Source: Haliotis rufescens (lineage: Eukaryota). From it: 64,000 nucleotides of DNA. Position 1 is the first letter of the stretch; every line of letters starts with the position of its first letter. The position numbers and the translations under genes are program-made. The stretch is taken from the NCBI RefSeq assembly GCF_023055435.1, contig NW_025963890.1, positions 15,810,001 through 15,874,000 of the forward strand. The letters are read 5' to 3'. The notes beneath the pieces were generated by a model. The model did not search any database. It worked only from the letters and a program-made list of their open reading frames with translations, and had not been told where the DNA came from. Positions 6,078 through 57,031 of the stretch are shown here, one piece after another.

Positions 6078-6145
6078 TATTTGTGTCTTCCAAAATTGTC
6101 TGTTAAGAGATGGACACTCGTTTGTGTGTCTTTCAAATCTATCTG

Positions 6146-6276
6146 CTGAAAGACGAACACGAGTTTCTTTCAAACCTGTGTCGTCTGCTCGAAGATACTG
6201 ACATTGATCAAGGCCAACTCGACTCCAATAATACTGCCGTCTGCTAAAAGTGGCGCTGAATTAACATTCGACTCAC
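6146..6276 (-). other. Probable 5'-UTR intron of the TLR gene (in every unit)
   Basis: Consensus donor GAG|GTGAGT at 6276 and pyrimidine-rich acceptor GTTCGTCTTTCAG ending at 6146, upstream of the ATG at 6077. Confidence 0.5.
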
Positions 6277-30406: not shown

Positions 30407-32232
30407 TATTTGTGTCTTCCAAAATTGTCTGTTAAGAGATGGACACTCGTTTGTGTGTCTTTCAAATCTATCTGCTGAAAGACGAACACGAGTTTCTTTC
30501 AAACCTGTGTCGTCTGCTCGAAGATACTGACATTGATCAAGGCCAACTCGACTCCAATAATACTGCCGTCTGCTAAAAGTGGCGCTGAATTAACATTCGA
30601 CTCACCTCGCAAAACAAACACTCTGAATCGCCCACTTCCTGATTTTTATATTTTAACTCCACGAGTCTTTGTCAGAGCATTTCAGTGCGTATGCTCAGCG
30701 TCCATTGGCTGAGAGTAGTAATGTAGAAGTTCAAAGGTCAAAAGTCGCACCTCACTGCGCGCATAAACAGACGACAATATTTCCACCCGCAGTGAGGCAG
30801 TCTACGGTTGGCGTTCAGAAACGTGATCACAGAGTGATCATGTCATTGTGTCACGTGTATTCTTACAACAAACCATTCAATTATAGACTATATGTATAAC
30901 ACCGTCCTGTTTATTGCATTCAGCAACAGTTCTACATACCTGTCAACTCTCACGCATCTCGCGTGAGTCTCACGCATTTATCACCTATGTCACGCCCACA
31001 CGCAAGGTTGGGAAATTACGGCAAGCATGGGTTGCTGAAGATCTATTCTAACCCGGATCTTCACGGGTCCGTTATATGCTGTGAGATCAATACACAGGAA
31101 CTCGTTATTGGTCAGTAAATAAAGATATAAACCATATCTACTTACAAATAGGGGGTATACATTATATTTATTGACCAATAACAAATTCCTGTGCATCAAT
31201 ATGACTTGACTCGTGCAGTCATGTGGATGTAAACTGTACGAGGCGCTGTTTAATATTTATTCCTGATTTGTTGATATCAATAATTCATTAATTGATAACA
31301 CAAAATAGATTTTCGGATATCGATAAAATCTATGTATGTTTGGATACCAATAAATGAAATTGTGATATCTAAAAACTTAACTTGTGACATCAATAATTCA
31401 CTTCCTGGTTCATGAAAAGAACGAATTCTTCCTTGAGGTCACACCACAGTAAGCTACCAGTCAATGACATCACAAATTCGATTACATATGATATGATAAA
31501 GTGAATTCTGGATATTTAACTAAATCGAACTTGTGATATCAATTAACCATTTTGTCATGTCACTAAATGAATTATTCAATTGATAAAATAAGTAATAAAT
31601 AGTAAAACTACGCGTCATAAAACACTATGCAGCAGCTTTCAGCACTAAATTTGGTAGTGGGTCGTTTACATTATTATGTTAACATTTACAATGTTAAAAA
31701 CTTCAAGATAAGTACTACGAAGTTTGTAAAGGTTTTTTATGGCAATTGAAGTGTAAAGGTTTCACTGCCATGTAGAGCTGGCCACTTAATATATACTTTT
31801 TAATGCTGCAACGTGATTTAACCGATCACTTCGTCAAATATTGATAATTGAAAAAACAAATCTAGTTATCCTTATTCATTCGAGTATGGTCCTGTTTCGC
31901 GTACACAAGATCGATCGAGATTCCAAGCGTGGAAGGCTAACTTAGATTCAAGCAGTGGATGCGTGGTTGTTGTTTGGATGGGTTATAGGGAGGGTGTGGA
32001 TGGCTTCTATCATGGGACGTAACTGAGTCGTCAGGAATGACATTAATTTCGTAGTTTGTCTGGTTTTCTGTCGAACATGTCAAGGACTAGTCTAGGATCC
32101 ACAACACGGTAGTTCCAATCGTATTCAGTATACTTCAATGTTTGAAGTTGCCTACAGGGTCGCGCTTTAGAAAGAAAACTAGTGCTTTCAAATACTTTTT
32201 TTCTCTGCGGTGATGTGATCATTAAATACATA

Positions 32233-33075
32233 TTATCCTTGACACACTATTAAAGTGTTTGTTGCACACCATCGGTTATCATTGACACAATATGAACGTC
32301 TAGGTTGCATCGTGGGTTATCCTTGACACATTATGAAAGTCTAGGTTGCACCGTGGGTTATCTTTGACACATAATAAACGTCTAGGTTGCAGCGTGGGTT
32401 ATCCTTGACACATTATGAACGTCTAGGTTGCAGCGTGGTTTATCCTTGACACATAATAAACGTCTAGGTTGCAGCGTGGGTTATCTTTGACACATTATGA
32501 ACGTCTAGGTTGCACCGTGGGTTATCCTTGACACATAATAAACGTCAAGGTTGCACCGTGGGTTATCTTTGACACATTATGAAAGTCTAGGTTGCACCGT
32601 GGGTTATCTTTGACACACTATGAACGTCTAGGTTGCAGCGTGGGTTATCCTTGACACATTATGAACGTCTAGGTTGCACCGTGGGTTATCCTTGACACAT
32701 AATAAACGTCTAGGTTGCAGCGTGGGTTATCCTTGACACATTATGAACGTCTAGGTTGCGCCGTGGGTTATCCTAGACACACCATGAGAGTCTATGTTGC
32801 ACCGTGGGTTATCCTTGACACATAATAAACGTCTAGGTTGCAGCGTGGGTTATCCTTGACACACCATGCGAGTCTATGTTGCACCGTGGGTTATACTTGA
32901 CACATTATGAACGTCTAGGCTGCGCCGTGGGTTATCTTTGACACATTATGAACGTCTAGGCTGCACCGTGGGTTATCTTTGACACAATATGAACGTCTGG
33001 GTTGCGCTGTGGGTTATACTTGACACACTTTGAACGTCTAGGCTGCACCTTAAGTTATCCTTGACATACTATGAC
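32233..33075. repeat. 41-bp minisatellite, ~20 units
   Basis: Same length as the array at 16381. Confidence 0.95.
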
Positions 33076-36000: not shown

Positions 36001-36212
36001 CAACACAGTAAAATCTCTCATTGGTTATACACATAATCTGACAAGGAGTACATACCTTTAAAACAGAATATACAGAATACTGAGTACAAAGATGAAATTA
36101 TTATGGCAAGAAATGGGAACAACATTACTATTCAAAGCCCGACAGGGTATAATTAATAGCCGCTTAACGCCAAGCAGTGTCCCTACATGTATGTATAACA
36201 ATTAAAACAGTT

Positions 36213-36949
36213 ATTGAAGCCTAAAGTCAATAACATTGAAGCTTCATCCCAATGACCTGTAAGTATTGAAGCTCTAGGCCAATAATATTGAATCTTCATC
36301 ACAATGACCTGTAAGAACTGAAGCTTTAGGCCAATAATATTGAATCTTCATCACGATTACCTGTAAGTACTGAAGCCTTAGGCCAATAATATTGAATCTT
36401 CATCACAATGACCTGTAAGAACTGAAGCTTTAGGCCAATAATATTGAATCTTCATCACGATTACCTGTAAGTACTGAAGCCTTAGGCCAATAATATTGAA
36501 TCTTCATCACAATGACCTGTAAGAACTGAAGCTTTAGGCCAATAATATTGAATCTTCATCACGATTACCTGTAAGAACTGAAGCTTTAGGCCAATAATAT
36601 TGAATCTTCATCACGATTACCTGTAAGTACTGAAGCCTTAGGCCAATAATATTGAATCTTCATCACAATGACCTGTAAGAACTGAAGCTTTAGGCCAATA
36701 ATATTGAATCTTCATCACGATTACCTGTAAGTACTGAAGCCTTAGGCCAATAATATTGAATCTTCATCACAATGACCTGTAAGAACTGAAGCTTTAGGCC
36801 AATAATATTGAATCTTCATCACGATTACCTGTAAGAACTGAAGCTTTAGGCCAATAATATTGAATCTTCATCACGATTACCTGTAAGTACTGAAGCCTTA
36901 GGCCAATAATATTGAATCCTCATAACGATGACCTGTAAGTATTGAAGCC
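36213..36949. repeat. 52-bp minisatellite, ~14 units, downstream of TLR copy 5
   Basis: Unit starts 36235 to 36911. Confidence 0.95.
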
Positions 36950-37271
36950 TGGATCATACAAAGGCGTCGGTTCGATGGCAGCCAAGAAACCAGTCAGAAG
37001 TCACAGGTCAATATCTTAATCGTCTCTTGCGAGGAACATGGATATTTGGGCTTATTCTGCTCTGGAATCTTCGCTGATTCACGGAATGGACTTAAGAATG
37101 TATATTTTACGTATAGTATGTATTAGACGAAACACAAATGGCACATAGTTCTTAGAAACATGATGTAGTTTATTGGTTGAGTGCAACTGAACCATTACCT
37201 ACATCAATATGAATCACTATAACCGGCATTGATGTATTGATGAAACTCAAGTTTGTATCACAAGACAGGCA

Positions 37272-39365
37272 CTACTTTAAAGCCATTATTTCAACTTGGC
37301 TCACAGATCGAGATCGAGAATTTTGAGATTTCTCCTCCTGAACCTCATGCACGATCTTTTCGAACAAGTCGCAGTTGTCAGCATCTATATACTTCTTGAG
37401 TCTTAGAAAAGCGTTCAGATAGCCATTGGTGGCAGTGGTGACGTTGTCGAGCCTGGCGACAATCACACGGCCGCGACGCTGTTTGACCATGATATTGTAG
37501 GTCTCCGTGAACTCGAACATCTTGGAGGGATTGTCCACATAGCTACTAGACAGCACAATGACAGCTGCGCGGCTTCTCTGGAGCGTCTTGATAACTTCAT
37601 CAGTGATCACTGTCCCCGGGTCCATGTCCCGGAGCGGGAAGTACAGTCTGAGGTTGTGATTCTGCTCCAGTTCATTAAGCAGTTTCTTGGACCAGACTCG
37701 GTCAGACTCACTCTCTCCATCCACCGACACAAACAAATCGTACTCCGAGTCCTCATCGCTAGTTCGCTTCAGCTTTTTTGCACCCGTATGAAGAAGGTGC
37801 ATCAATTCATACCGAAACACCACAACAAGGGCCACCAAAAGCACAAATATGACTGCAAATGTTCCCAACAGGGCGCTGAATATCTTAGGAAAAGGACTGC
37901 GAATCTGACAGTTAAGTAACCTTTGGTCCGCTCGTACAAGCTGTACCGTATTGCCCGCTGGCATCAAGCAAGTGATGTCGGTGACGTTGTAGTTCCGAGG
38001 TTGGTATCTGAGCCACAGTGACATCCACGTGGAGGAACAGCTGCACACAAATGGGTTTCTGTTGATGTCTAGTTTAGAATAATGGATGTTCTGGATTTTT
38101 TTCGGTAAAAACTCAAGACGATTGTCCGATAGGCCCAGAAATGCAACCCCATTTTGCAAAAGGTCAATTGCTGAAGGTGCAATAATTTTAATATTATTTC
38201 TAGATACGTCAAGATATTTTGTTCTTTGCAAATAACCTACTGCTTCCAAGAAGGTAATGGAATTATCGCCAAAAAGCAGTTTTAAATTACCGTCGGGAAC
38301 CATGGACGGTAAACGTGTCAAGTTTCTACCACGGCAGTCAACCAACATCTGTTTTTTTGCTGGCTGATCCTGACATAAACATTCTTGAGGACATTTGTCC
38401 GTGACATTACACACAAACGCATCCAGTGGCAGACGTAGCACTTGCTTTCCTTTCAGATGAGCTGGACTGTCGCAGAGAATATTTAAGTAGTTCCTCCATA
38501 TTACCGTATATAAATTCGATGACAGGTGGAGAAATTCATGAAAATTGCAATCACAGATCCACTTATTATATCTGAAGTCAAACCCCCAATTATTAAATGT
38601 CCCACCAATTTTCCGATCACGAATTCCATAGATCTCCAATTCCTCTAAAACCCATGTCGTAAACAAATTGTGAGAAAAGCCTACCATACCGGGTCCATAG
38701 TGTTTGGATTCATCCACTAACCAGTTTTCTTCGTTTGAAAAATGGGATATGTTATTGTGACTAAGGCCGAAAACACAGAATTCATGGGTAATCCTTATCG
38801 GCCAGGCCTCAGACGCTGTCAGCTCGTTGTAGTCAAGATGAACCCTCATCAATCCATGTAAGTCTTCACTGAACACTCCTGGCTCAATAGTATGTATTTT
38901 GTTATAAGCAAGGTTGATGTATCTCAACCTTTCCAAACCAACGAACACACCCGTCTCAACAGATTTAACTTCCTGGTTGACAAGTACCAGAGCTATCAAA
39001 TTCTTCAGACAGCTAAGGCTGGGAATTGTTTCGATTTTACCGGTCACCGCACGTATGCTTGCAATGTTGGGATAATCACATATATCCTCAGGGAGACGTG
39101 TGATGCACAGGTTTGAGAAGAAGAGTCGGAATGGGGATGTTTTGTTGGTGCCGGGTGGTAGGAGAAGGGTGACGTTGTCAGGCTGACTGCAGTCGTAATT
39201 CAAGATGAGGTTCGGCAATCTGTCCTCTGTCATGTTAGTGCAACACATCATGTCATCTACAGAACACTGAAGGACGTCCTCCACGGTGACACTGGTTCCG
39301 ACAGACACACTGATCAAGACAATCGCGATGAGGAAAACCAAACGTAGTGACAGAGAAAACAGCAT
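37272..39365 (-). CDS. Toll-like receptor copy 5, 697 aa
   Basis: Intact ORF with a 1-codon insertion (DDMMCC) and a TAA>TTA stop change adding C-terminal LK. Confidence 0.95.
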   Translation of the reverse strand: MLFSLSLRLVFLIAIVLISVSVGTSVTVEDVLQCSVDDMMCCTNMTEDRLPNLILNYDCSQPDNVTLLLPPGTNKTSPFRLFFSNLCITRLPEDICDYPNIASIRAVTGKIETIPSLSCLKNLIALVLVNQEVKSVETGVFVGLERLRYINLAYNKIHTIEPGVFSEDLHGLMRVHLDYNELTASEAWPIRITHEFCVFGLSHNNISHFSNEENWLVDESKHYGPGMVGFSHNLFTTWVLEELEIYGIRDRKIGGTFNNWGFDFRYNKWICDCNFHEFLHLSSNLYTVIWRNYLNILCDSPAHLKGKQVLRLPLDAFVCNVTDKCPQECLCQDQPAKKQMLVDCRGRNLTRLPSMVPDGNLKLLFGDNSITFLEAVGYLQRTKYLDVSRNNIKIIAPSAIDLLQNGVAFLGLSDNRLEFLPKKIQNIHYSKLDINRNPFVCSCSSTWMSLWLRYQPRNYNVTDITCLMPAGNTVQLVRADQRLLNCQIRSPFPKIFSALLGTFAVIFVLLVALVVVFRYELMHLLHTGAKKLKRTSDEDSEYDLFVSVDGESESDRVWSKKLLNELEQNHNLRLYFPLRDMDPGTVITDEVIKTLQRSRAAVIVLSSSYVDNPSKMFEFTETYNIMVKQRRGRVIVARLDNVTTATNGYLNAFLRLKKYIDADNCDLFEKIVHEVQEEKSQNSRSRSVSQVEIMALK

Positions 39366-39915
39366 TATTTGTGTCTTCCAAAATTGTCTGTTAAGAGATG
39401 GACACTCGTTTGTGTGTCTTTCAAATCTATCTGCTGAAAGACGAACACGAGTTTCTTTCAAACCTGTGTCGTCTGCTCGAAGATACTGACATTGATCAAG
39501 GCCAACTCGACTCCAATAATACTGCCGTCTGCTAAAAGTGGCGCTGAATTAACATTCGACTCACCTCGCAAGACAAACACTCTGAATCGCCCACTTCCTG
39601 ATTTTTATATTTTAACTCCACGAGTCTGTGTCAGAGCATTTCAGTGCGTATGCTCAGCGTTCATTGGCTGAGAGTAGTAATGTAGAAGTTCAAAGGTCAA
39701 AAGTCGCACCTCACTGCGCACATAAACAGGACAATATTTCCAACAGCAGTGAGGCAGTCTACGGTTGGCGTTCAGAAACGTGATCACATGCTGATTATGT
39801 CATTGTGTCACGTGTATTCTTACCAACAGCTGTTTGTGTCGCGATCGATAGCGATCGATAGTCCTGTTTATTGCATTCAGCAACAGTTCTACATACCTGT
39901 CAACTCTCACGCATC

Positions 39916-40473
39916 CCCATTTCTGGTGTCCCCCGACGTGATATTGCTGGAATATGGCTGAAAGCGGTGTCAAGTCCAACTCACTCACACACATGGGTGC
40001 AATGTGTGAAGCCCATTTCTGGTGTCCCCCGACGTGATATTGCTGGAATGTGGCTGAAAGCGGTGTCAAGTCCAACTCACTCACACACATGGGTGCAATG
40101 TGTGAAGCCCATTTCTGGTGTCCCCCGACGTGATATTGCTGGAATATATCTGAAAGCGGTGTCAAGTCCAACTCACTCACACACATGGGTGCAATGTGTG
40201 AAGCCCATTTCTGGTGTCCCCCGACGTGATATTGCTGGAATATATCTGAAAGCGGTGTCAAGTCCAACTCACTCACACACATGGGTGCAATGTGTGAAGC
40301 CCATTTCTGGTGTCCCCCGACGTGATATTGCTGGAATATGGCTGAAAGCGGTGTCAAGTCCAACTCACTCACACACATGGGTGCAATGTGTGAAGCCCAT
40401 TTCTGGTGTCCCCCGACGTGATAATGCTGGAATATTGCTGAAAGCGGTGTCAAGTCCAAGTCACTCACACACA
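39916..40473 (+). repeat. 96-bp tandem repeat (~6 units) derived from the 3' half of SINE family C
   Basis: Unit starts 39916, 40012, 40108, 40204, 40300, 40396. The unit matches the SINE body and tail at 46390-46482. Confidence 0.92.
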
Positions 40474-40532: not shown

Positions 40533-40760
40533 CACTGTCGGACAAAAGAAAGTATACACTTGAAAATTGGATGTGACCAAAACATTACAAACGTTATCAG
40601 GCTGAAGGCATTCACCGAAACCCTACAAAGTTACCGCCCCAAACACAACTACGATACCCGTATTAAATACATCACCATCCAATAACCATTTCTTGTTTGT
40701 TTCATTTTAAACCAAACAAACTCATCAAACATGTGTGTATACTTTCTTTTCCCCGCAGTT
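40533..40760. mobile_element. Tc1/mariner-type MITE
   Basis: TIRs CACTGTCGGACAAAAGAAAGTATACAC / GTGTATACTTTCTTTTCCCCGCAGTT, flanked by TA on both sides. Confidence 0.7.
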
Positions 40761-42043
40761 TATATAAGATGATAAACTCCCTGCTGAAACTCAACCTAAA
40801 CCTCGTTGTTTGTCATCAACTAAAAAGGATGGAGGTTATATCATAAAAATAATAACACAAATAATATCATAAGACGGGGATCTACAGCAAAAGAATATAT
40901 TTCTGCAGCCTTAATCAAATTATTTGTGCATTTGATTTTTCTTTTACTGACATCAGATTACAAAGGGAAATTCCATTTTAACTAAAATTTAACACTTGTG
41001 TTAAAAGAATAGTTAAAAACTATTAATATTAACAGCTCTTACACGCATAACGCCAGTGAAAATCCCCAATATTACTTTTAGATTTCAAGTTTTAAGGGCA
41101 GTACCTTATTAGACAGCTTTATGTGACTTTACAACTACTTTTTACAGTCATAGGTTTTGGTACAGTAGGTAATTTAGTAACACATTTTGTACAGCACCCT
41201 GTCAATGATAAAATAGGTACCAAAATAAAATCAAAAGTTTTAGGTTGGTTGGTTGGTTGATTAACGCCGCACACAGCAATATTCCAAGCTATATGACGGC
41301 GGTCTGTAAATAATCAAGTCTGGACCAGACAATACAGTGATAAATATCAAGAGCATCGATCCACGCAATTGGGACAAAAGTTTTAGGAAAAAGATTAAGA
41401 AAAAGAACATTTGCGGAAAGTGTAAATGTGTAGGAAAAAACATACGAGAAAGTTAAATATATACCATTTGATACAACGTGTGAATCAGATCAAGCCTTCT
41501 GTGAAATCAGAACATATCCCATCAAGAATCCTTCGCGAGTTTACATTGGACCAGTCTTAGGCGCCTCGGGCCACTGTGCAGAGTTGCGTCCCTTAGGCAT
41601 GCCAGCATCCTATGACCGTGGGTTTGAATGCTGGATTCGCCCTAATTATATTTCTAGGTTTGTCAGCGTGGACAAAACAACATAACCCTGTTTGGAATCC
41701 TAAATCCATTCCAGAATAAGGTGGGTTGACCCTAATCGAACACTTGTTTATATGGGGCACCAGCGTGTCTTCCCAGATGTGGCAGCTGCTTATGAACTAC
41801 ATGTTTGATCACCATGCCTTAGTCCAGAACATCGCCATAAACTAGCAGACCAAATGAGCAAATGAAAACACAACCAAAATTTGTAACAAATAACGTGTTT
41901 TATTACCAAAAAGAAAACAATAAAACAAATAAAGGTAAAATTTATGTATTTCCCAAATATTGTAACAAATGCCTCAACAGTCTTAAAATGATTCATAAAT
42001 GTTTTGTATATAAGTATATACATATGTGTTCAGAGTTCACTGC

Positions 42044-43813
42044 CTAATCATCCTTCTTCTTAAACACACTCTTGACTCTTCTGAAGAAGTTGGCCACCCT
42101 GGATAGCAAGGCCTTCAGGAAGGAGTGGGTTGGCTGGATGATCTCCTCGTCCACGAGATCTACTTCAACAAAGTCAGTGTCGTCCACGATGTACTGACCA
42201 GCGATAGTGAGGGACACAGAAGGGACAGTGCTGGGGCGAAGGGTCTGTGGGACGGGCAGGTGAGACAAGTGGGCAGGGATGGTCAGGGACTTTGAAGTAG
42301 GTTGCTATAGATAGGGAGGTAGTGGAAAGAATGGAATGTGAGGAAAGAATATTACTAGAAAAAGTTATTCAATCTTTGAATTTTATTGTAGCAAATAAAA
42401 CATCATGGTGGTAAAGACAGAAAAGGTGTGAAAAAAGAAACAAGGTAAATAAAGATGATATATATTATATAGTAAAAACTGAAAGGTAGATGATGCCAAG
42501 GGAAGGTAGATTGTTTGTTTGCTTGCTGTTTGATGCCTCACTCAGCAATATTCCAGCTATATAATGGCGGTCTGTAAATAATCGAGTCGACCAGACAATT
42601 CAGTGATTGACATCATGAGCATTGATCGTAAAGATGATGACATGAAGGATATTCTTGGAAATACAAATGTGACAAACTTTACAGAATTACTGAAGTCTTT
42701 GAACCAAAGTACTCTCAACATTCATAATAGGACTTTATTAATTGCAAACTGTTGGTTTCTAAGGTAGGAAAACAGTATAAACATTCAGTTACAGCTTTAT
42801 GAAAACAGGGACCAGTACACAGAGGTGTTCAACATATCGGTCGAAACTCATGGAAGTGCTAAACAGGCGTTGTTAAAGACAACCCTTTATGACACCTACA
42901 TGGCAAGGGGCAGGATAAGTCAGTTGGGACAGAGGCTCGAGGAACCAGATCATCCGATCAACTGTGGGGAAATAGAAGAATAAACATACAGGGTATTAAA
43001 AGCCAAGAATGTATGTTGCTGGACCCTAACCTTTGGCTGGTGACTAGTAAATAATATATCATTTTGCAGTTTATAAATTATTTGTGCTGACAGATAGGTG
43101 GTATATCGCTAAGCTTTTAGGGGTTCCCCTTTTCCAAAATGTTCCAGTTTTATGTTGGATAAAGGGTTATGGTAATAACCAAGGGCAGCTGGCCTAGACA
43201 CTGCAAAGTATATCTCCCTGTTACTTTATAACTTGAAAACTTCAGACAAAATATGGGATAATAAGTTACAGTTTACCTTTCACTGCTAAACTAATTCTAT
43301 TTGATAAAATACAAGGGATTCAGCCTAACCATACAATATTGATTTGAGCTCAGACTGCTGTGTCAGTTGAGAGTTTATAAGAAATCATGGGCAGATCCAG
43401 GTTTATAAAAAAGGGATGGGGGGCAGGGGTGTGTTCCACTCAAGTACGGGCACTTCTCACCCAAAACACTTCCCCAAGACTCACAAACACTTCATGTAAA
43501 CCACTGATAATAAATTAACGGAATTCATTTTACAACCAAATCAACATGTTACCATGGTAGGAAAGGCGCATAAAGAATGTCAATGAGATGTAAAAAAACC
43601 CAGAGAACCCACATTTTCAAATAATGTTTACAAGTTCAAAGTACACATGGGCCCTGCATTGAACATCTAAGCCCCTAAAGCATGCAGTGTTTGAAGATCA
43701 GTACAGGAGCCATGATACACTATGCCTCATCACACTAAAATACCAACGTGTAGGTACGGAATCTACTGAAGCGTAATTAGAATTGTACCTTGAACATACG
43801 TGCTCGCATTCAT
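42044..43813 (-). CDS. Uncharacterised 115-aa protein, three coding exons, copy A
   Basis: Exons 43813-43789 (gtcaccATG...CAAG|gtacaa), 42961-42900 (ttccccacag|...|gtaggt) and 42304-42044 (polypyrimidine-tag|...TAG) join in frame (phases 1, 0). AATAAA at 41899-41904. Confidence 0.8.
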
Positions 43814-44340
43814 GGTGACAGGTTCAGGAATTGCAATAAAGGATAGGAAAATAACGCTTTCAGGACAGCAAAGTGCAGATGTAGCATCAAAATGGCGTCG
43901 ATGTAACATCAAAGTGAGAACTGTCGTCAAGGAAGACATGAAGTCTCGTAAAATCACGCGATATTACAAAATAAAGTTAACCTGGCTCCCGACTTCATTT
44001 GCGCTTGCACTGGGGTGTAAGAGACGGAGCTCGGCTGTATTTACAGGAGAGAAGTTAAGTCGCGCCATCATATAAATGGAGCAAAATTAATTATGAGCTG
44101 AATTAATTCCTTCAGTCACGATTCTGGGTGTTACTAGTTACTATTCAACCGGCAGCTTATAAGGGTCCGTCAAATTTAAGGTACGACAGTGACTATAATC
44201 ATACTGTGACTATTTTCACAACCAGCAATATGAAGGGTGCTAGGGATTTATTCTGACCGGGACCTCACGGGGACTGGTATATCGAGATGACAGGTACCAT
44301 CAGCCGACCCTGCATGGTTGGTACACTAGTTTCAGGTCAT

Positions 44341-44505
44341 GAGTGAGTGAGTATGGTTTTACACCACTTTTAGCAATATTCCAGCAATATCACGGCGGGG
44401 GACAACAGAAATGGGCTTCACACATTGTGCCAATGTTGGGTATCGACCCCGGGTCTTCAACGTGACGAGCCAACGCTTTAACCACTAGGCTACCCGACCG
44501 CCCCC
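44341..44505 (-). mobile_element. tRNA-derived SINE family C with (ACTC)n tail
   Basis: A box TAGCCTAGTGG, B-box-like GGGTCGATACCC, body TGTGTGAAGCCCATTTCTG. Other copies ~46324-46482 (+), 51074-51238 (-), 53034-53190 (+), 57426-57588 (-), 59144-59312 (-). Confidence 0.85.
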
Positions 44506-44783
44506 TCAGGTAACGATCAGGTCATGACCAGGGGCATGTTCAACAATACTTGTCTAATGGAGTACACTGACTTGCTTGAACAGGATTGACATGACCTTAC
44601 CCGAACAAAGCTCTTAAAACATTAAGTAGAAGACAGCTTTCATATTAGCTTATTCCATTAAAGAAAAGATATTACATGGGAAAAAATATCATGATATGAA
44701 TATTTCAGTTTAAGAAATATAAATTAATGTTGAAGCTTCGTTAAAAATTCAAAACTGGTAATCAATGATCGATAAGTAATTAG

Positions 44784-45920
44784 AACAAGAGGCCCATAGG
44801 GCCTGTATCGCTCTCCTGGATATTGACGCAATCATGACAAAATATACATTTGCATTGTACATGTATATAATACTCCAAATACTTCGTAATTTTGATTCTG
44901 TCAGCATTCAATATGGGTGGATGGCAAATCTGACAGCATGAACGTGTATTTATCTAGATACAAATGTGGCATAAAGATCTGAACCGTTTCCATGTTATGA
45001 TCCAGGATAAATCATATTAAAAGTATTATTCTCTTCATAACAAACAAATGTATACAATGTATCTGTTTATTATAGGGTGGGGATAATATCGGGTTGCAAG
45101 TTAAGGTCAAGATTCTAACTCCTTTGGGAGTGCCGGACAGATGAACTGAAGGGCCAGTCCTTGTAGCATATGTGCATTCCTCTCATTATACTCTCAATTG
45201 TACATATGGTATACGGTGGGGATCTTAACTGTGTCCAAGTTATAAACTCTTTTTAGCCCCGGCCCTTAGTTTCCGGGGGTAGGGGTAGGGTTAAGCCCCT
45301 CCATTTCTCCAATTTGAATCCCCACCATTGGAGAATGCTTCCATCCAAATATGGTTGATAACTATCTCTTAGTTCCAGAGAGGAAGTGGTCTGAAGCAAT
45401 ATAGCCAATATTTCGCCCCACCCCTCAGCCTCTTGGGGGGTGATCAGCCCTTCCTTTTGTACAATTTTGAATTCTCACCACCCGAGAATGCTTCCAACAA
45501 TATATGGTTGATATCTATCTCTCAGTTCAAGAGAAGAAGTCGTTGAAAACAATAACGCCTATTTGACCACGCCCATAAGCCACTTAGGGGGTGATCAGCC
45601 CCTCCATTTGTACAATTTTGAATTCTCACCTGCCGAGAATGCTTCCAAACCAACTATGGTTGATATCTATCTCTTAGTTCCAGAGAAGAAGTCGTTTAAA
45701 GCAATAAAGCCAAATTACCCCTATTTAGCCCCGCCCCTCAGCAGTTTTGGGGGGTCGGCCCAACCATTTGTACAATTTTGAATACCCACCACCTAGGGAT
45801 GCTTCCAGTCTAATTTTGTTAATTTCCAACAAGTGGTTTAGAAGAAGTCGTTTGAATAAATTGTTGACGAATGATATGATAGACGGACGACGGACGCCAC
45901 GGTATGGTATAAGCTCACCT
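44784..45920 (+). mobile_element. Non-autonomous Helentron-associated (HINE/pearl-like) element with internal tandem subrepeats
   Basis: 5' AACAAGAGGCCCATAGGGCCTGTATCGCTCTCCT with a short palindrome; ~4 internal repeats of ~150-170 bp; (GACG)n microsatellite; subterminal GCTCACCT. Matches the layout of molluscan HINEs as I recall it. Confidence 0.6.
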
Positions 45921-47157
45921 TGGTCGGGTTGTCGACTGGTCGGCTCGGAGTAAGTAAAACCGTGTCTGAATGGGGTGTCAATGTTAAACTGCGGCATGTT
46001 ATCTCAGTGGACTAGCACTGTAAAACCGGCTAGTTCAAGCAGCCACGCACGCACGCACACACGTGCATGAACGTCGCCGTATGCTCGACGTTAAACCCAT
46101 TTCACCTCATCTCACCTTACCTCGCCAAGGTGATATCCATGTTGAAATGTATGGATGAAATATGATAGGCGTTGCATCATAACCGTTTAGCCGAGTCCTT
46201 GCATCTATACCAATCAATGTCATGATGTTATGACAAAATGTTGCCAAGCCTCCAAATATTATTGTCCACACTGAAACATGAACCCAGCCAGACCGCCAGA
46301 GATGGATACTCTCCTTCTCAACAGGGGGCGGTGGGTAGCCTATTGGGTTAAAGGGTTAGCTCACGCCGAAGACCAAGGTTCAATTGCCTACATGAGTACA
46401 TGTGTGAAGCGCAATTCTGGTGTCCCCCGCACTGATATTCGTGGAATATTGCTGAAAACGGCGTAACACCGTACTCACTCATTCGTTTTAAATTCATTTT
46501 AAATGTTTGATTTGTATCCTGGACCTATCAGGTGTAGCCTGGTTGTCCAAGATGAAACATATTGCAACTGTACCAAAATGTAGACCATTTACTCAACAAG
46601 AAATGTTGCAACCAGAGGATTTATTCATCTTCGTCACTCTGTTCATGGTACAGTGCGTGCGTGCGTGCGTGCGTGTAACAATTGTTTGGAACCTTGGAAA
46701 TACAATGCTGTGGGGCCATGACATTAATCCAGTGTCGGAAAGAACTCGACAAAATGATTTGTGGTACAACGTCTGCCACACTCCATGCATTAATTTCCCA
46801 TGGTGGTCAGAAGGTATGTATTGTTCGTGGTACAACTTTCTACTTAATGATTTGATTATTACCAAACATTTTGCAAGTAATATATTTCCTAAATATTGTT
46901 ACAAATGCGTCAAGAGTCCTAAAGGAGGCCTCACTAATTCATGAGTTTCACATATTTATTATCCTAAAAACACTTGTGTGAAGATTAAGTGATGTACATG
47001 TAAACTGCTCAGTATGTGAGTGGATGTGACGTTTGGAATGTTAATTTCTTTCCAGAATTAAATAGGTTAAACACCTGTTCAGATGGTGCACCTGCGTGCC
47101 GTCCCAGATGTAGCAGCTGTTTATGGACTACATGTGTAATCACCATGCGTTAGTCTA

Positions 47158-47420
47158 GAGTGAGTGAGTGAGTGAGTGAGTTGGGTTTAACGCCGCTTTA
47201 AACAGTATTCCAGTTATATCACGGCGTGTGAGCTTAATGTGGGAGGAAAGCCCGAAGTGATGCAGGTCTGAGACGTTTACCACTTCGGTGAAACCCACGA
47301 GCACAGGTATGGTGCTGACAAACCTAGAAACATAATCGGGGCGAACCGGGATTCGAACAAACAATCATAGATTTCTGGCGTGCCCAAGGGGCGCAACTCT
47401 GCGCATCGAATCGCGGCGCC
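47158..47420 (-). mobile_element. SINE family D (B box GTTCGAATCCC), sharing the 3' tail of families A and C
   Basis: Related segments at ~41560-41670, 60825-60910 and 61975-62168; (ACTC)n tail. Confidence 0.6.
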
Positions 47421-48775
47421 TTAGTAGACGACTGTGCCACCCGTGCCCTCCGGCAGTTTATATAAGATTATAAACTCCCTGCTGAAACTCAACCTAAACC
47501 TTGTCGTTTGTAATCAGCTAAAAAGGGGTGGAGGTGTTATCATAAAAATAATAACACAAATAAAATCATAAGACGGGGATTTACAGCAAAAGAATATATT
47601 TCTGCAGCCTTAAACAAATTATTTGTGCATTTGATTTTTCTTTTACTGACATCAGATTACCAAATGAAATTCTATTTTAACTACATATTAACACTTGTGT
47701 TAAAGAATAATAAAAAACTTAGATATTTATATCTTGGCAAATAATTTTAATATTAACTGCTCTATAACTTACTAGCGTAACGCCAGTGAAAAGGCACAAT
47801 ATTACTTTTAGATTTCAAGTTTTAAGGGCAGAACCTTATTAGACAGCTTTATGTGACTTTACAAATACTTTTTACAGCCATAGGTTTTGGTACAGTAGGT
47901 AATTTAGGCACACATTTTATACAGCACCCTGTCAATGATAAAATAAGTACCAAAATAAAATCAAAAGTGTTAGTTTGGTTAGTTGGTTGGTTTGTTGTTT
48001 CACGCCGCACTCAGCAATATTCCAAGCTATATGACGGCGATCTGTAAATAATCAAGTCTGGACCAGACAATACAGTGATTAATATCATGAGCATCGATCC
48101 ACGCAATTGGGACAAAAGTTTTAGGAAGAAGATAAAGAACTTTTGCGGAAAGTGTAAATGTGTAGAAAAAACATATGAGAAAGTTAAATATATACCATTT
48201 GATACAACGTGTGAATCAGATCAAGCCTTCTGTGAAATCAGAACATATCCCATCAAGAATCCTTAGCGAGTTTACATTGGACCAGTCTTAGGCGCCTCAG
48301 GTCACTGTGCAGAGTTGTATCCCTTAGGCATGCCAGCATCCTATGACCGTGGGTTTGAATGCTGGATTCGCCCTAATTATATTTCTAGGTTTGTCAGCGT
48401 GGACAAAACAACACAACCCTGTTTGGAATCCTAATTCCATTCCAGAATAAGGTGGGTTGACCCTAATCGAACACTTGTTTATATGGGGCACCAGCGTGTC
48501 TTCCCAGATGTGGCAGCTGCTTATGAACTACATGTTTGATCACCATGCCTTAGTCCAGAACATCGCCATAAACTAGCAGACCAAATGAGCAAATGAAAAC
48601 ACAACCATAATTTGTAACAAATAACGTGTTTTATTACCAAAAAGAAAACAATAAAACAAATAAAGGTAAAATTTATGTATTTCCCAAATATTGTAACAAA
48701 TGCCTCAATAGTCCCAAAAATGATTCATAAATGTTTTGTATATAAGTATATACATATGTGTTCAGAGTTCACTGC

Positions 48776-50546
48776 CTAATCATCCTTCTTCTTAAACACA
48801 CTCTTGACTCTTCTGAAGAAGTTGGCCACCCTGGATAGCAAGGCCTTCAGGAAGGAGTGGGTTGGCTGGATGATCTCCTCATCCACGAGATCTACTTCAA
48901 CAAAGTCAGTGTCGTCCACGATGTACTGACCAGCGATAGTGAGGGACACAGAAGGGACAGTGCTGGGGCGAAGGGTCTGTGGGACGGGCAGGTAGGACAA
49001 GTGGGCAGGGATGGTCAGGGACTTTGAAGTAGGTTGCTATAGATAGGGAGGTAGTGGAAAGAATGGGGTGTGAGGAAAGAATATTACTAGAAAAAGTTAT
49101 TCAATCTTTGAATTTTATTGTAGCAAATAAAACATCGTGGTGGTAAAGACAGAAAAGGTGTGAAAAAAGAAACAAGGTAAATAAAGATGATATATATTAT
49201 ATAGTAAATACTGAAAGGTAGATGATGCCAAGGGAAGGTAGATTGTTTGTTTGTTTGCTTGCTGTTTGATGCCTCACTCAGCAATATTCCAGCTATATAA
49301 TGGCGGTCTGTAAATAATCGAGTCGACCAGACAATTCAGTGATTGACATCATGAGCATTGATCGTAAAGATGATGACATGAAGGATATTCTTGGAAATAC
49401 AAATGTGACAAACTTTACAGAATTACCGAAGTCTCTGAACCAAAGTACTCTAAACATTCATAATAGGACTTTATAAATTGCATACTGTTGGTTTCTAAGG
49501 TAGGAAAACAGTATAAACATTCAGTTACAGCTTTATGAAAACAGGGACCAGTACACAGAGGTGTTCAACATATCGGTCGAAACTCATGGAAGTGCTAAAC
49601 AGGCGTTGTTAAAGACAACCCTTTATGACACCTACATGGCAAGGGGCAGGATAAGTCAGTTGGGACAGAGGCTGGAGGAACCAGATCATCCGATCAACTG
49701 TGAGGAAACAGAAGAATAAACATACAGGGTATTAAAAGCCCAGAATGTATGTTGCTGGACCCTAACCTTTGGCTGGTGACTAGTAAATAATATATCATTT
49801 TGCAGTTTATAAATCATTTGTGCTGACAGATAGGTGGTATATCGCTAAGCTTTTAGGGGTTCCCCTTTTCCAAAATGTTCCAGTTTTATGTTGGATAAAG
49901 GGTAATGGTAATAACCAAGGGCAGCTGGCCTAGACACTGCAAAGTATATCTCCCTGTTACTTTATAACTTGAAAACTTCAGACAAAATATGGGATAATAA
50001 GTTACAGTTTACCTTTAACTGCTAAACTAATTCTATTTGATAAAATACAAGGGATTCAGCCTAACCATACAATATTGATTTGAGCTCAGACTGCTGTGTC
50101 AGTTAAGAGTTTATAAGAAATCATGGGCAGATCCAGGTTTATAAAAATGGGATGGGGGGCAGGGGTGTGTTCCGCTCAAGTACGGGCACTTCTCACCCAA
50201 AACACTTCCCCAAGACTCACAAACACTTCATGTAAACCACTGATAATAAATTAACGGAATTCATTTTACAACCAAATCAACATGTTACCATGGTAGGAAA
50301 GGCGCATAAAGAATGTCAATGAGATATAAAAAACCCCAGAGAACCCACATTTTCAAATAATGTTTACAAGTTCAAAGTACACATAGGCCCTGCATTGAAC
50401 ATCTAAGCCCCTAAAGCATGCAGTGTTTGAAGATCAGTACAGCCATGATACACTATGCCTCATCACACTAAAATACAAACATGTAGGTACGGAATCTACT
50501 GAAGCGTAATTAGAATTGTACCTTGAACATACGTGCTCGCATTCAT
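48776..50546 (-). CDS. Uncharacterised 115-aa protein, copy B
   Basis: Exons 50546-50522, 49697-49636 and 49036-48776; splice sites and frame intact; E>Q and H>Y relative to copy A. Confidence 0.8.
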
Positions 50547-51515
50547 GGTGACAGGTTCAGGAATTGCAATAAAGGATAGGAAAATAACGCTTTCAGAACA
50601 GCAAAGTGCAGATGTAGCATCAAAATGGCGTCGATGTAACATCAAAGTGAGAACCGTCGTCAAGGAAGACATGAAGTCTCGTAAAATCACGCGATATTAC
50701 AAAATAAAGTTAAACTGGCTCCCGACTTTATTTGCGCTTGCACTGGGGTGTAAGAGACGGAGCTCGGCTGTATTTACAGGAGAGAAGTTAAGTCGCGCCA
50801 TCATATAAATGGAGCAAAATTAATTATGAGCTGAATTAATTCCTTCAGTCACGATTCTGGGTGTTACTAGTTACTATTCAACCAGCAGCTTATAAGGGTC
50901 CGTCAAATTTAAGGTACGACAGTGACTATAATCATACTATGACTATTTTCACAACCAGCAATATGAAGGGTGCTAGGGATTTATTCTGACCGGGACCTCA
51001 CGGGGACTGGTATATCGAGATGACAGGTACCATCAGCCGACCCTGCATGGTTGGTACACTAGTTTCAGGTCATGAGTGAGTGAGTATGGTTTTACGCCAC
51101 TTTTAGCAATATTCCAGCAATATCACGGCGGGGGACAACAGAAATGGGCTTCACACATTGTGCCAATGTTGGGTATCGACCCCGGGTCTTCAACGTGACG
51201 AGCCAACGCTTTAACCACTAGGCTACCCGACCGCCCCCTCAGGTAACGATCAGGTCATGACCAGGGGCATGTTCAACAATACTTGTCTAATGGAGTACAC
51301 TGACTTGCTTGAACAGGATTGACATGACCTTACCCGAACAAAGCACTTAAAACATTAAGTAGAAGACAGCTTTCATATTAGCTTATTCCATTAAAGAAAA
51401 GATATTACATGGGAACAAATATCATGATATGAATATTTCAGTTTAAGAAATATAAATTAATGTTGAAGCTTCGTTAAAAATTCAAAACTGAAATCAATGA
51501 TCGATAAGTAATTAG

Positions 51516-52653
51516 AACAAGAGGCCCATATGGCCTGTATCGCTCTCCTGGATATTGACGCAATCATGACAAAATATACATTTGCATTGTACATGTATAT
51601 AATACTCCAAATACTTCGTAATTTGGATTCTGTCAGCATTCAATATGGGTGGATGGCAAACCTGACAGCATGAACGTGTATTTATCTAGATACAAATGTG
51701 GCATAAAGATCTGAACCGTTTCCATGTTATGATACAGGATAAATCATATTAAAAGTATTATTCTCTTCATAACAAACAAATGTATACAATGTATCTGTTT
51801 ATTATAGAGTGGGGATAATATCGGTTTGCAAGTTATGGTCAAGATTCTAACTCCTTTGGGTGTGCCGGACTGATGAACAGAAGGGCCAGTCCTTGTAGCA
51901 TATGTGCATTCCTCTCATTATACTCTCAATTGTACATATGGTTATACGGTGGGGATCTTAACTGTGTCCAAGTTATAAACTCTTTTTAGCCCCGGCCCTT
52001 AGTCCCCGGGGGTAGGGGTAGGGTTCAGCCCTCCATTTCTCCAATTTGAATCCCCACCACTGGAGAATGATTCCATCCAAATATGGTTGATAACTATCTC
52101 TTAGTACCAGAGAGGAAGTGGTCTGAAGCAATATAGCCAAATTACCCCTATTTCGCCCCGCCCCTCAGCCTCTTGGGGGGTGATCAGCCCTTCCTTTTGT
52201 ACAATTTTGAATTCTCACCACCCGAGAATGCTTCCAACAATATATGGTTGATATCTATCTCTCAGTTCAAGAGAAGAAGTCGTTGAAAACAATAACGCCA
52301 AATTACTCCTATTTGGCCACGCCCATAAGCCCCTTGGGGTGTGATCAGCCCCTCCATTTGTACAATTTTGAATTCTCACCACCGAAGAATGCTTCCAACC
52401 AAATATGGTCGATATCTAACTCTTAGTTCCAGAGAAGAAGTCGTTTAAAGCAATATAGACAATTTACCCCTATTTAGCCCCGCCCCCTCAGCCCAACCAT
52501 TTGTACAATTTTGAATACCCACCACCTAGGGATGCTTCCAGTCTAATTTTGTTAATTTCCAACAAGTGGTTTAGAAGAAGTCGTTTGAATAAATTGTTGA
52601 CGGATGATATGATAGACGGACGACGGACGCCACGGTATGGTATAAGCTCACCT
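51516..52653 (+). mobile_element. HINE-like element, duplicate copy
   Basis: Duplicate of 44784-45920 with indels in the internal repeats. Confidence 0.6.
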
Positions 52654-53983
52654 TGGTCGGGTTGTCGACTGGTCGGCTCGGAGTAAGTAAAACCGTGTCT
52701 GAATGGGGTGTCAATGTTATACTGCGGCATGTTATCTCAGTGGACTAGCACTGTAAAACCGGCTCGTTCAAGCAGCCACGCACGCACACACACACATGCA
52801 CTAACGTATGCGCGACGTTAAACCTCACCTCACCTCACCAAGGTGATATCCATGTTGAAATGTATGGATGAAATATGATAGGCGTTGCATCATAACAGTT
52901 TAGCCGAGTTCTTGCATCTATTCCAATCAATGTCATGATGTTATGACAAAATGTTGCCAAGCCTCCAAATATTATTGTCCACACTGAAACATGAACCCAG
53001 CCAGACCAGAGATGGATACTCTCCTTCTCAACAGGGGGCGGTGGGTAGCCTATTGGTTAAAGGGTTAGCTCACGCCGAAGACCAAGGTTCAATTGCCTAC
53101 ATGAGTACATGTGTGAAGCGCATTTTTGGTGTCCCCCGCACTGATATTCGTGGAATATTGCTGAAAACGGCGTAACATCATACTCACTCATTCGTTTTAA
53201 ATTCATTTTAAATGTTTGATTTGTATCCTAGGCCTACCAGGAATAGCCTTGTTGTCAAAGATGAAACATATTGCAACTGTACCAAAATGTAGACAATTTA
53301 CTCAACAAGAAATGTTACAACCAGAGGATTTATTCATCTTCGTCACTCTGTTCATGGTACAGTGCGTGCGTGCGTGCGTGTAACATTTGTTTGGAGCCTT
53401 GGAAATACAATGCTGTGGGGCCATGACATTAATCCAGTGTCGGAAAGAACTCGACAAAATGATTTGTGGTACAACGTCTGCCACACTCCATGCATTAATT
53501 TCCCATGGTGGTCAGAAGGTATGTATTGTTCGTGGTACAACTTTCTACTCCATGATTTGATTATTACCAAACATTTTGCAAGTAATATATTTCCTAAATA
53601 TTGTTACAAATGCGTCAAGAATCCTAAAGGAGGACTCACTCACATATTCATGAGTTTCACATATTTATTATCCTAAAAACACTTGTGTGAAGATTAAGTA
53701 ATGTACATGTAAACTGCTCAGTATGTGAGTGGATGTGACGTTTGGAATGTTAATTTCTCTCCAGAATTAAACACCTGTTCAGATGGTGCACCTGCGTGCA
53801 GTCCCAGATGTAGCAGCTGTTTATGGACTACATGTGTGATCACCATACGTTAGTCTAGAGTGAGTGAGTGAGTATTCCAGTTATATCACGGCGTGGGAGG
53901 AAAGCCGAAGTTTCTGGCGTGCCCAAGGGACGCAACTCTGCACATCGAATCGCGGCGCCTTAGTACACGACTGAGCCACCCGT

Positions 53984-54587: not shown

Positions 54588-57031
54588 CTAATCATCCTTC
54601 TTCTTAAACACACTCTTGACTCTTCTGAAGAAGTTGGCCACCCTGGATAGCAAGGCCTTCAGGAAGGAGTGGGTTGGCTGGATGATTTCCTCATCCACGA
54701 GATCAACTTCAACAAAGTCAGTGTCGTCCACGATGTACTGACCAGCGATAGTGAGGGACACAGAGGGGACAGTGCTGGGGCGAAGGGTCTGTGGGACGGG
54801 CAGGTGAGACAAGTGGGCAGGGATGGTCAGGAACTTCGAAGTTGGGTGCTATTAGAGAGGGAGGTAGTGGAAAGAATGGGACGTGAGGAAAGAATATTAT
54901 GTTGAAGAAAAAGTTATTCAATTATTGAATTATATTGTAGCAAATATGAAATTTTGTCGGTAGAGCCAGAAAAGTGATGAAGGTATGAGTGAAAAAGTCT
55001 ATAGGTGGTTATAATTAAGAATTAAATCTGTACATGAAGTAAACAAAAATGATATTATTTTATATAGTAGATAATGAATGACGGTAAAAGGCTGATGTGA
55101 GGTACAGACAAAGGTAAAGCAGATATGACGTGAATGACCGAATGGTCTATTGCAGTATTGGAAATATGTATATTGAGAGCTGAGATTCTTTCTGTGAGAA
55201 ACCATAGACAGTGTGATCCAGGCAGAAGATTTGTATTGTTACAAGTACACATTCAATAATGAGAGGTGGAGATTACATAATCAAAAATAGACATCATGAA
55301 GGGATTTTCTAGGAAATACCAAGAATGATACCATAATGAAGTATATACCAGGCCAAGTATAATGGTAAGCAGTTAATAGTCATACATCCAGTTGGTAGAA
55401 TTTGCCTTAAACTGCTTGTTTAGGACCAGAATATATAATAATGTTTGTTGGTTTTCTTTTAGTTTGGGAAGTATGTCATATTTAGTGTAATGTTTAGGAT
55501 GTTAAATTTCAACCAGTATATTAATGTTTTCCACATGTAAGTGATACTGAAAACACAATATCATATTATATGCAGAGCTAAACACTAAGAATATACATAA
55601 TAACAGGCCCCTATACCACCTACTGGAGAAGGGGCAGGAAAAGGCAGGGGGGACAGAGGCAGGGGGAACCAGATCATCCGATCAACTGTGAGGGAATGGA
55701 AGGGTAAGACATTGAGTACAAGCCACTTCAGAGGGTAAATCGAAAAGTTTGTTGCCTCACATAGAAAATCGTTCAGAATCAAAATTATTTTTCCAATGTA
55801 TATTTCCTTTGATACACTTGGCCCAGCAATGCTTTCTCAAAGCCAGATACAATTATTTGTTTGTAGCTTGATGTGTCATAATCCAAGAGATGTTCTCCTT
55901 CATACACCTTCTGTGATACCTCCCATGTGACCAGAACATTTCGATTTACCCTCATACATATACTAACCTATGAGAACATAATGTCTATCATTGTAAAATG
56001 TTTAATTTCATTTCAAACTCAGGGATGCTTATTTAGGAGACTGGACTCATCTTTAACCCTCTGGATGTCATTTGGACATATATGTCCCTACACAAAACAC
56101 AGTTGCTGTGCCAGAGGGACATATATGTCCTTCTGAAACAACATGTTAAAAGAATTGAATAAATACAGCGATAGTACACAGGCTATTTTTAGGTGGCAGC
56201 CAGAGGGTTAAGACACATTGCAGTCCAGCTGGTCATGTGACTATGTTACCATTTCGACACAAACAGACACAGGTGAGTTCATGTAAAACGTTGGGTAGAA
56301 TGTGAGGCCGAATGCATTTTAAAAAAGTCTATCCTATGCTGTATGATTATGGACTGAGGGCACCAGTTGTTGGTAATTTCGCAATTGACCAATGGCAGAG
56401 ACGGTTGTAGGTCTAAAAGGATCTTCATCAAGTGAAGGGACAAACGACATGTGTGTCTCCCTACACGTCATTGGCAGGATTGCGGTATATACCGATACCG
56501 TATGCCATTTTTGGAACAGATTTGCACGAGCTCCTTTCTTTGCCGCTCTAACGGTTTCCAAGTTTTTCAGACGTGTTTTGGGGTCAGTTTATGGTTAACA
56601 TCAGAGAAATCGGTAGTTTCTAGTGTGGGTTGATGTATAGGCCTGCCTCCTTTATATGTAATATGTAAATATATTTATATAGACATTTAGCCTTGATACA
56701 ACAGGCTGCTAATCTCTCAAACTCACGCTCGAAATTATGGGGCTATTCCCACGTATTTTTTTCAACAAAAAATCGAAACCCTGGGGAAGAAATCACTGGG
56801 GTAGGCTCGGCCTATAGCTCTACGGTCGATGTTGGGGTCATTGTCGGCACAGGTACTGGACAACTGTACCCCAGGTATATTTACGTATACAGAAACGTAT
56901 CCAAGCTTGGCAATATTATATTAGATACTGTCACTTCACATTGTCTAATAGTAATAGGCTAATGTTACAGGATCATAAAGACATGGAAACAAAGTCAGAA
57001 TTGTACCTTGAACATACGTGCTCGCATTCAT
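54588..57031 (-). CDS. Uncharacterised 115-aa protein, copy C (diverged introns)
   Basis: Exons 57031-57007, 55685-55624 and 54848-54588 have the same lengths (25/62/261 nt) and splice sites as A and B, although the introns barely align. Confidence 0.82.
56057..56207. mobile_element. piggyBac-type MITE in intron 1 of copy C
   Basis: TTAA target duplication; TIRs CCCTCTGGATGTCA / TGGCAGCCAGAGGG; internal GGACATATATGTCC palindrome twice. Confidence 0.75.

Follow-up and report, generated by a model that had tools for sequence, protein, structure and literature searches.

A small gene that occurs three times on the minus strand of a stretch of 64,000 nucleotides from Haliotis rufescens (NCBI RefSeq assembly GCF_023055435.1, contig NW_025963890.1, forward-strand positions 15,810,001 to 15,874,000; hereafter the window) belongs to a family of at least 57 gene copies in five or more subfamilies, which appears from database searches to be restricted to abalone. 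Its protein product of 115 residues ends in a module composed of an acidic motif, DDTDFVEV in the window, and a cationic amphipathic helix, and sequence comparison identifies this module as the conserved core of a real, constrained family. The function proposed for the module is tentative. Of the readings considered, we lean towards one in which the protein would be a disordered cytosolic adaptor that is held on membranes by its helix and presents a motif of the type that binds ATG8-family proteins.

In the first window copy, minus-strand positions 42047-42184 encode DDTDFVEV...SFLKALLSRVANFFRRVKSVFKKKDD. These are the last 46 residues of the frame, which end ...IAGQYIVDDTDFVEVDLVDEEIIQPTHSFLKALLSRVANFFRRVKSVFKKKDD and are followed by a stop codon at 42044-42046. 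An earlier note on this DNA, made from its letters, had placed DDTDFVEV at 42161-42184, and there it is found, read from 42184 to 42161, with the helix and tail reaching 42047. The module forms the end of exon 3 in a gene of three exons and 115 codons. All three window copies have this structure (Table 1), with a coding exon 1 of 25 nt (starting with ATG and coding for MNASTYVQ plus the first base of a V codon), an exon 2 of 62 nt and an exon 3 of 258 nt; all of their introns are of the GT-AG type and each copy translates to 115 residues. The gene model was obtained by tblastn with an annotated abalone protein, followed by inspection of splice sites, and the exons were joined solely as a frame check. 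Queries in the database searches were exon 3 alone or annotated database proteins.

A six-frame search of the animal's own genome with exon 3 returned 57 matches with identities between 40% and 100%; they are distributed over a dozen contigs, most of them in tandem arrays. All 57 loci were fetched and translated, and the motif counts given below cover these 57. The named database relatives are solely "uncharacterized proteins" of 95-129 aa from four species, H. cracherodii, H. rufescens, H. rubra and H. asinina, and the near-identical annotated ones match at 97% over exon 3. All 11 matches of a single-sequence database search fall in Haliotis. The same holds for two profile searches (16 and 25 matches), except for the ENA protein P0013 in each. 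Searching exon 3 with phmmer against 1.84 billion representatives gave five matches, four of which are family members; the fifth, the Calx-beta repeat protein P0012, is regarded as a spurious, compositional match. Comparison of 15 members with Pfam-A gave nothing meaningful (no family for the first member, and two chance-level matches, each in 1 of the 15). In the PDB, a sequence search with the 32-aa motif region gave no match and one with the family profile a single match at E = 1.3; the ESM Atlas gave no usable match, and a scan of viral contigs no relative. Nothing on the family was found in the full-text literature through the LOC identifiers of six members, supplementary files being outside the scope of that search, and the literature on Haliotis amphipathic or antimicrobial peptides and orphans returned only general reviews of antimicrobial peptides (AMPs). 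The family appears to be a taxonomically restricted orphan family, found in abalone only.

Some features of the protein ends were also recorded. An N-terminal pattern, M-[NSQ]-x-S-Y-x-Q...D-x-[VM]-I-[RW]-F-P-L, is common to the subfamilies (P0032, P0014, P0015 and P0048-P0055), and 31 of 40 family proteins start with MN, MQ or ME. The alternative long N-terminus of model P0033 was rejected, as the corresponding frame in the window stops before exon 2. At the other end, subfamily A, to which the window copies belong, has KKDD or KKDL (di-lysine-like), and the other subfamilies have K-x-D-A.

The earlier note regarded loss of the motif in homologues as evidence against its proposal, and the motif is kept. 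Its family-wide core is D-x-[DH]-F-[VI]-[ED]-[VI]-x-L, located about 15 residues ahead of the helix; F-[VI]-[ED]-[VI]-x-L is present in 56 of the 57 loci, and the leucine at +5 in 57 of 57. Protein alignments of 15 and of 40 sequences both have F74, L79, S90 and S97 invariant. R98 is likewise invariant in the 15-sequence alignments, and R98, V75, R105 and K111 are at least 90% conserved in the 40-sequence alignment. LSR is found in the helix in 52 of 57 loci, and the exon-3 frame is intact through the helix in 56. The only locus clearly broken is L015 (G000:C556:18573406-18573579), the sole clearly decayed member, in which the motif now reads DFTDTDL and the frame departs from the helix after SFLKV and enters repeat-like sequence.

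Selective constraint was estimated in 20 loci of subfamily A by counting parsimony changes per site. The helix has 0.12 changes at codon positions 1+2 versus 0.52 at position 3, and the motif segment 0.18 versus 0.36. For the flanking untranslated region (UTR) and intron the figures are 1.18 and 1.75, both inflated by alignments with the three most diverged members. Changes at positions 1+2 are 2-4 times rarer than at position 3 and 5-10 times rarer than in the flanks. For the other two subfamilies the region labels are approximate and the counts small, and the pattern is less clear. Because changes are scarcer at positions 1+2 than at position 3 or in the flanks, the comparison points to purifying selection acting on the protein, and most strongly on the module of motif and helix.

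The identity of the module among the three window copies, which the earlier note emphasized, is real. The copies have the same residues from TIPAHLS to the end, the sole difference being an H/Y change upstream, and the window contains exactly three occurrences of a 50-nt stretch of the module (42048, 48780 and 54592), against an expectation of none from 100 shuffles. Over the module region there are 1-3 nucleotide differences per copy pair and three variable sites in total, all synonymous. However, this identity says little, because the flanks are nearly as alike as the module: in non-coding sequence the copies are 95.4-97.9% identical in the 3' flank and 85-98% towards the intron. Positions 40752-47173 and 47450-53873 form a tandem duplication with 95.5% identity, and a third, more diverged duplication unit aligns over only ~900 bp (92%). 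The three copies are, judging from these alignments, recent duplicates, and their peptide identity is close to what duplication alone would be expected to give, so it carries little weight. The meaningful conservation is that across divergent paralogues and other abalone species. As a separate observation, exon 2 of copy 3 reads FPLPLSPLPFPAPSP and that of copy 1 FLEPLSQLTYPAPCH, while the exon-3 module is the same in both; the copy 3 variant matches that of other annotated abalone proteins (P0002).

Could the family have no protein function at all, its members being prediction artefacts, or unexpressed or decaying copies in segmental duplications that resemble the motif by chance? None of the listed sequencing runs that contain the stretch is on record as RNA. 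Contigs of four runs (X1, X3, X5 and X7) cover introns and exons alike, and no splice joint was seen among 15 joints examined of 72. All database entries are automatic "uncharacterized protein" models, and the recent origin of the window copies also fits such an explanation. On the other hand, the intact exon-3 frames and the paucity of changes at positions 1+2 in subfamily A argue against it, as does the persistence of the module down to 40% identity and in the four named Haliotis species, including H. asinina. Moreover, a contig of 503 nt carries the complete 102-aa frame of the relative P0013, which suggests a spliced transcript; so does the recovery of a first coding exon of 25 nt by automatic annotation. 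Taken together, we regard absence of function as very improbable.

The helix is supported by structure prediction. AlphaFold2 runs with 15 and with 40 family sequences each predict a single helix of 23-25 residues (90-112 and 90-114, respectively; block pLDDT, the predicted local distance difference test score, 69-85). In both runs everything outside the helix is coil, including the acidic motif (residues 1-89, pLDDT 50-66), and the predicted template modelling score (pTM) is 0.2. The hydrophobic periodicity pointed out in the earlier note is borne out by a hydrophobic moment of 0.70 over the 18 residues 95-112, reached by 44 of 5000 shuffles (Eisenberg scale). Six family proteins tested, from several subfamilies, all have a cationic amphipathic helix, with moments of 0.57-0.76. 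The eight basic residues counted in the module are five K and three R, and the window helix has a charge of +6. In the six proteins the charge is +3 to +6 over the final 30 residues and -6 to -8 over the 20 that precede them.

No signal peptide had been visible in the window copies, and the family agrees: of 40 family proteins, none has a hydrophobic run of more than 5 within its N-terminal 40 residues, and none exceeds 1.59 in its highest 10-residue Kyte-Doolittle mean (an N-terminal signal-peptide heuristic, not SignalP). A transmembrane-like 19-residue window was found in none of the 40, save for a borderline value in the aberrant read-through tail of one model. With neither signal peptide nor transmembrane segment, and with coil plus one predicted helix, we take it that the protein is most likely a cytosolic, disordered one that bears an in-plane amphipathic helix at its C terminus.

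Comparison with known short motifs may provide some clues regarding the acidic segment. The core LC3-interacting region (LIR), [FWY]xx[LIV], is matched in 56 of 57 loci, including FVEV of the three window copies; the one miss is L015, which has FTDT and in which the helix is destroyed. The narrower pattern [FW][VI]x[VI] is also present in 56 of 57. The GABARAP interaction motif (GIM) is given as [W/F]-[V/I]-X2-V in the abstract of PMC5538626. Its strict form, [W/F]-[V/I]-x-V, is found in 21 of 57 loci, including all three window copies, so that FVEV agrees with both the core LIR and the GIM. At least two D/E occur in the four residues upstream of the aromatic residue in 44 of 57 loci (DDTD in the window); the other 13 are of the DAPH type and one DDVT. 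ATG8-family genes are present in the genome.

By analogy, the closest known counterpart in working principle, which is not a relative, is the cytoplasmic tail of M2 from influenza A virus. PMC3991421 reports that the M2 peptide DADDGHFVSIELE binds LC3 and that the F91S, V92S and I94S mutants fail to bind. F-V-x-[VI]-x-L is common to DADDGHFVSIELE and DDTDFVEVDL, and two abalone subfamilies (DDSHFVEILL and DAPHFVDINL) have H-F-V-x-I-x-L in common with it. The two are alike in being short and in pairing an acidic F-type motif, placed in a predicted strand, with an amphipathic helix that binds membranes in M2, where it is membrane-proximal and in the same tail, and would do so in the abalone protein. 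Unlike the abalone protein, M2 is viral and has a transmembrane ion-channel helix; the M2 helix precedes the LIR, whereas the abalone motif precedes the helix. Searches of the PDB, Pfam and viral contigs gave no sequence homology between the two.

Cellular proteins show similar motifs. The same source (PMC3991421) places an FVxI core in optineurin and ATG13, and DDFVMI of ATG13 is listed as a verified LIR (PMC5119064, Table 1). The window motif resembles the F-type LIR/GIM motifs of ULK1, ATG13, optineurin and PLEKHM1 in having a [W/F]-[V/I]-x-V or -I core after acidic residues. However, these are large multidomain proteins encoded by single-copy genes, whereas the abalone protein is a 115-aa orphan with at least 57 copies, and the T at hexapeptide position 1 of the window motif breaks the cLIR and xLIR patterns. 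BNIP3/NIX and FUNDC1 are small selective-autophagy receptors that, as is proposed for the abalone protein, combine a disordered segment bearing an acidic LIR with a C-terminal membrane anchor. Their anchors are true transmembrane helices and they are conserved across animals; the abalone protein differs in its predicted in-plane amphipathic helix and its restriction to abalone, and no homology was detected.

Given the fit of the motif and these analogies, we tentatively favor a disordered cytosolic adaptor that is held on membranes by its helix and presents an ATG8-binding-type motif. Under this reading, the helix would lie in-plane on an anionic membrane surface and might, when unbound, be neutralised by the acidic segment next to it. 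Exposed and acidic, the F-V-x-V/I-x-L strand would dock onto a partner through beta-augmentation, the best candidate being an ATG8-family protein of the GABARAP type, and the protein could serve as a minimal adaptor, receptor or decoy for ATG8 that is tethered to membranes. The earlier note had made essentially this proposal. It survives in part: the lack of a signal peptide or transmembrane segment, the predicted coil around the motif, the match to the core LIR and to the GIM, and the likeness to M2 speak for it, and the failure of the cLIR and xLIR patterns speaks against it.

Several observations weigh against the adaptor. First, the T at position 1 of TDFVEV does not fit the cLIR and xLIR regular expressions, and xLIR is passed by only 3 of the 57 loci; the patterns were taken from PMC5119064 and were built from 26-27 examples. 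This failure does not exclude function, because the validated M2 LIR (FVSI) likewise is not an xLIR, being a mere "WxxL" match with a low position-specific scoring matrix score according to PMC5640201. Second, the core LIR is common by chance, and the 115-aa protein has two more matches, YVQV and FRRV. Third, the contigs of the four runs lie on introns as well as exons, and the 15 joints examined (of 72) include no splice joint. Fourth, it would be unusual for an autophagy adaptor to have 57 or more copies. Fifth, the invariant L at +5, S90, S97/R98 and the helix 'RRV' are unexplained by generic ATG8 or membrane binding and hint at a specific partner.

The last point leads to an explanation that ranks close behind the ATG8 adaptor and that we consider possible, if somewhat doubtful, namely that the architecture is the same and the partner is not ATG8. 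The motif and helix would then bind some other, possibly abalone-specific, protein or complex, and the helix would be a protein interface rather than a membrane anchor. Consistent with this, there is complete or near-complete conservation of residues that ATG8 or membrane binding would not need (L79 in all 57 loci, S90, S97, R98, R105 and K111), the N-terminal SY.Q..D..I[RW]FPL is also conserved across subfamilies, and the window copies fail cLIR and xLIR. However, by inspection FFAT-like, AP/GAE-type and SUMO-interacting (SIM) motifs all fit less well than LIR/GIM, and the SIM-like VDLV is not conserved in the other subfamilies. Among the candidates tried, FFAT-like and AP/GAE-type motifs were set aside for this poor fit, and three were rejected as confined to subfamily A: the SIM-like VDLV+DEE, the KKxx-type C-terminus and a 14-3-3-like RPSTVP.

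The charge pattern allows another interpretation, which the earlier note also raised. The helix could be membranolytic (antimicrobial or organelle-permeabilising) and inhibited by the acidic segment until proteolysis frees it, for example through caspase cleavage after VE[VI]D, or until damaged cells release it by an unconventional route. Precursors of cationic alpha-helical AMPs have an anionic pro-region followed by a cationic amphipathic helix. The abalone protein is like them in its anionic segment followed by a cationic amphipathic helix of ~24 residues, and unlike them in that a signal peptide is found in 0 of 40 proteins, a dibasic processing site is missing and the helix sequence is strongly conserved. 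The pairing of -6 to -8 with +3 to +6 and the moments of the six proteins tested fit the masked-peptide interpretation, as does the presence of VE[VI]D directly before the invariant L in 33 of 57 loci. So do the large tandem expansion and, in the window, the adjoining array of Toll-like receptor (TLR) genes; tandem expansion and adjacency to immune genes are often seen for immune effectors. Against it stand, besides the missing signal peptide, the lack of a K/R pair between acidic segment and helix in any subfamily (...DEEIIQPTHSF...) and the strict conservation of the helix (LSR), atypical where amphipathicity alone suffices. Of the 57 loci, 24 lack the caspase P1 aspartate but retain F, E/D and L. 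The caspase site was accordingly dropped as a candidate, P1 being N, L, P or S elsewhere with the flanking F and L retained. A classical secreted AMP precursor is disfavoured, and masking in the wider sense, although compatible with the charge pairing, seems to us unlikely.

A more far-reaching proposal goes beyond the adaptor. The family could be a lineage-specific, massively amplified set (at least 57 copies) of membrane-tethered ATG8 binders, host counterparts of the M2 tail, acting as xenophagy or antiviral receptors or as ATG8 decoys, or switched by caspases at VE[VI]D into free membrane-active helices. By analogy with M2 this is conceivable, and we consider it a long shot.

Table 1. Features of the three gene copies in the window
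Feature	Positions	Strand	Remarks
Copy 1 coding exon 1; donor GT 43788-43787	43789..43813	-	
Copy 1 exon 2, codes (V)DRMIWFLEPLSQLTYPAPCH; acceptor AG 42963-42962, donor GT 42899-42898	42900..42961	-	
Copy 1 exon 3, 86 codons QPTSKS...KKKDD; acceptor AG 42306-42305	42047..42304	-	annotated 115-aa Haliotis proteins match over exon 3 at 97-100% identity
Copy 1 acidic motif DDTDFVEVDL, protein residues 70-79	42155..42184	-	F74, E76 and L79 invariant in 15-sequence alignment
Copy 1 C-terminal cationic amphipathic helix, residues 90-112 (SFLKALLSRVANFFRRVKSVFKK)	42056..42124	-	AlphaFold2 prediction and hydrophobic moment
Copy 1 candidate AATAAA polyadenylation signal, ~140 nt past stop	41899..41904	-	sequence alone
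Copy 2 coding exon 1	50522..50546	-	
Copy 2 exon 2	49636..49697	-	
Copy 2 exon 3; motif 48887-48916, helix 48788-48856	48779..49036	-	one H to Y change vs copy 1, upstream of module
Copy 3 coding exon 1	57007..57031	-	
Copy 3 exon 2	55624..55685	-	7 of 21 residues differ from copy 1
Copy 3 exon 3; motif 54699-54728, helix 54600-54668	54591..54848	-	module residues same as copy 1

Window positions 1-40000 contain a minus-strand tandem array of TLR genes, with leucine-rich repeat (LRR) and TIR domains, a period of ~8 kb and units 96-99.8% identical. Frames of 726-729 aa with LRR_8, LRRNT/LRRCT and TIR lie at 12470-14650, 20040-22220, 28322-30502 and 37272-39461. In another copy the frame is broken in two, 4009-4779 and 4800-6173, and the longer part has no TIR match. 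Among the matches listed, TIR matches span C112:15806630 to 15847742. A fourth exon-3 copy of the family, 98% identical, lies at G000:C112:15792510-15792764, 17.5 kb before the window start. Family copies thus flank the array at 15792510 on one side and at 15852047-15864591 on the other, and since the fourth copy lies beyond the array, the TLR genes are bracketed by family members. Linkage to TLR genes was rejected as a general rule: only this locus adjoins TIR matches directly, three other arrays lie 93-148 kb from a TIR match, and the rest have none among the 150 matches listed.

Next to the third copy, a plus-strand open frame of 399 aa at 59750-60949 contains BTB and BACK domains (E = 4e-14 and 2e-12). 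The TLR units carry minisatellites, with self-alignments of 83-98% identity, at an offset of ~41 bp (386-1268, 7898-8780, 16381-17222, 23945-25073 and 32233-33074), ~52 bp (2995-3679 and 36212-36950) or 96 bp (39916-40473). A very high-copy interspersed repeat is found at 41501-41702, 42511-42712 (within intron 2 of copy 1) and 44329-44400, where the summed contig word depth in four runs is 10^4-10^6 versus 10-400 nearby; many loose contig ends and false joints fall at its borders.

At present the finding is a well-defined orphan family, not a demonstrated mechanism. Should the helix prove membranolytic instead of serving as an anchor, the protein would be an effector of an unusual sort, leaderless and self-masked. 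If ATG8 is bound by the motif and membranes by the helix, as in the adaptor that we tentatively favor, a mollusc would possess a family of minimal autophagy adaptors that is both taxonomically restricted and highly amplified. The motif and anchor, ~60 residues together, would then constitute a compact natural module for tethering ATG8 to membranes, and the wiring of selective autophagy could arise and expand within one genus, possibly for immunity.

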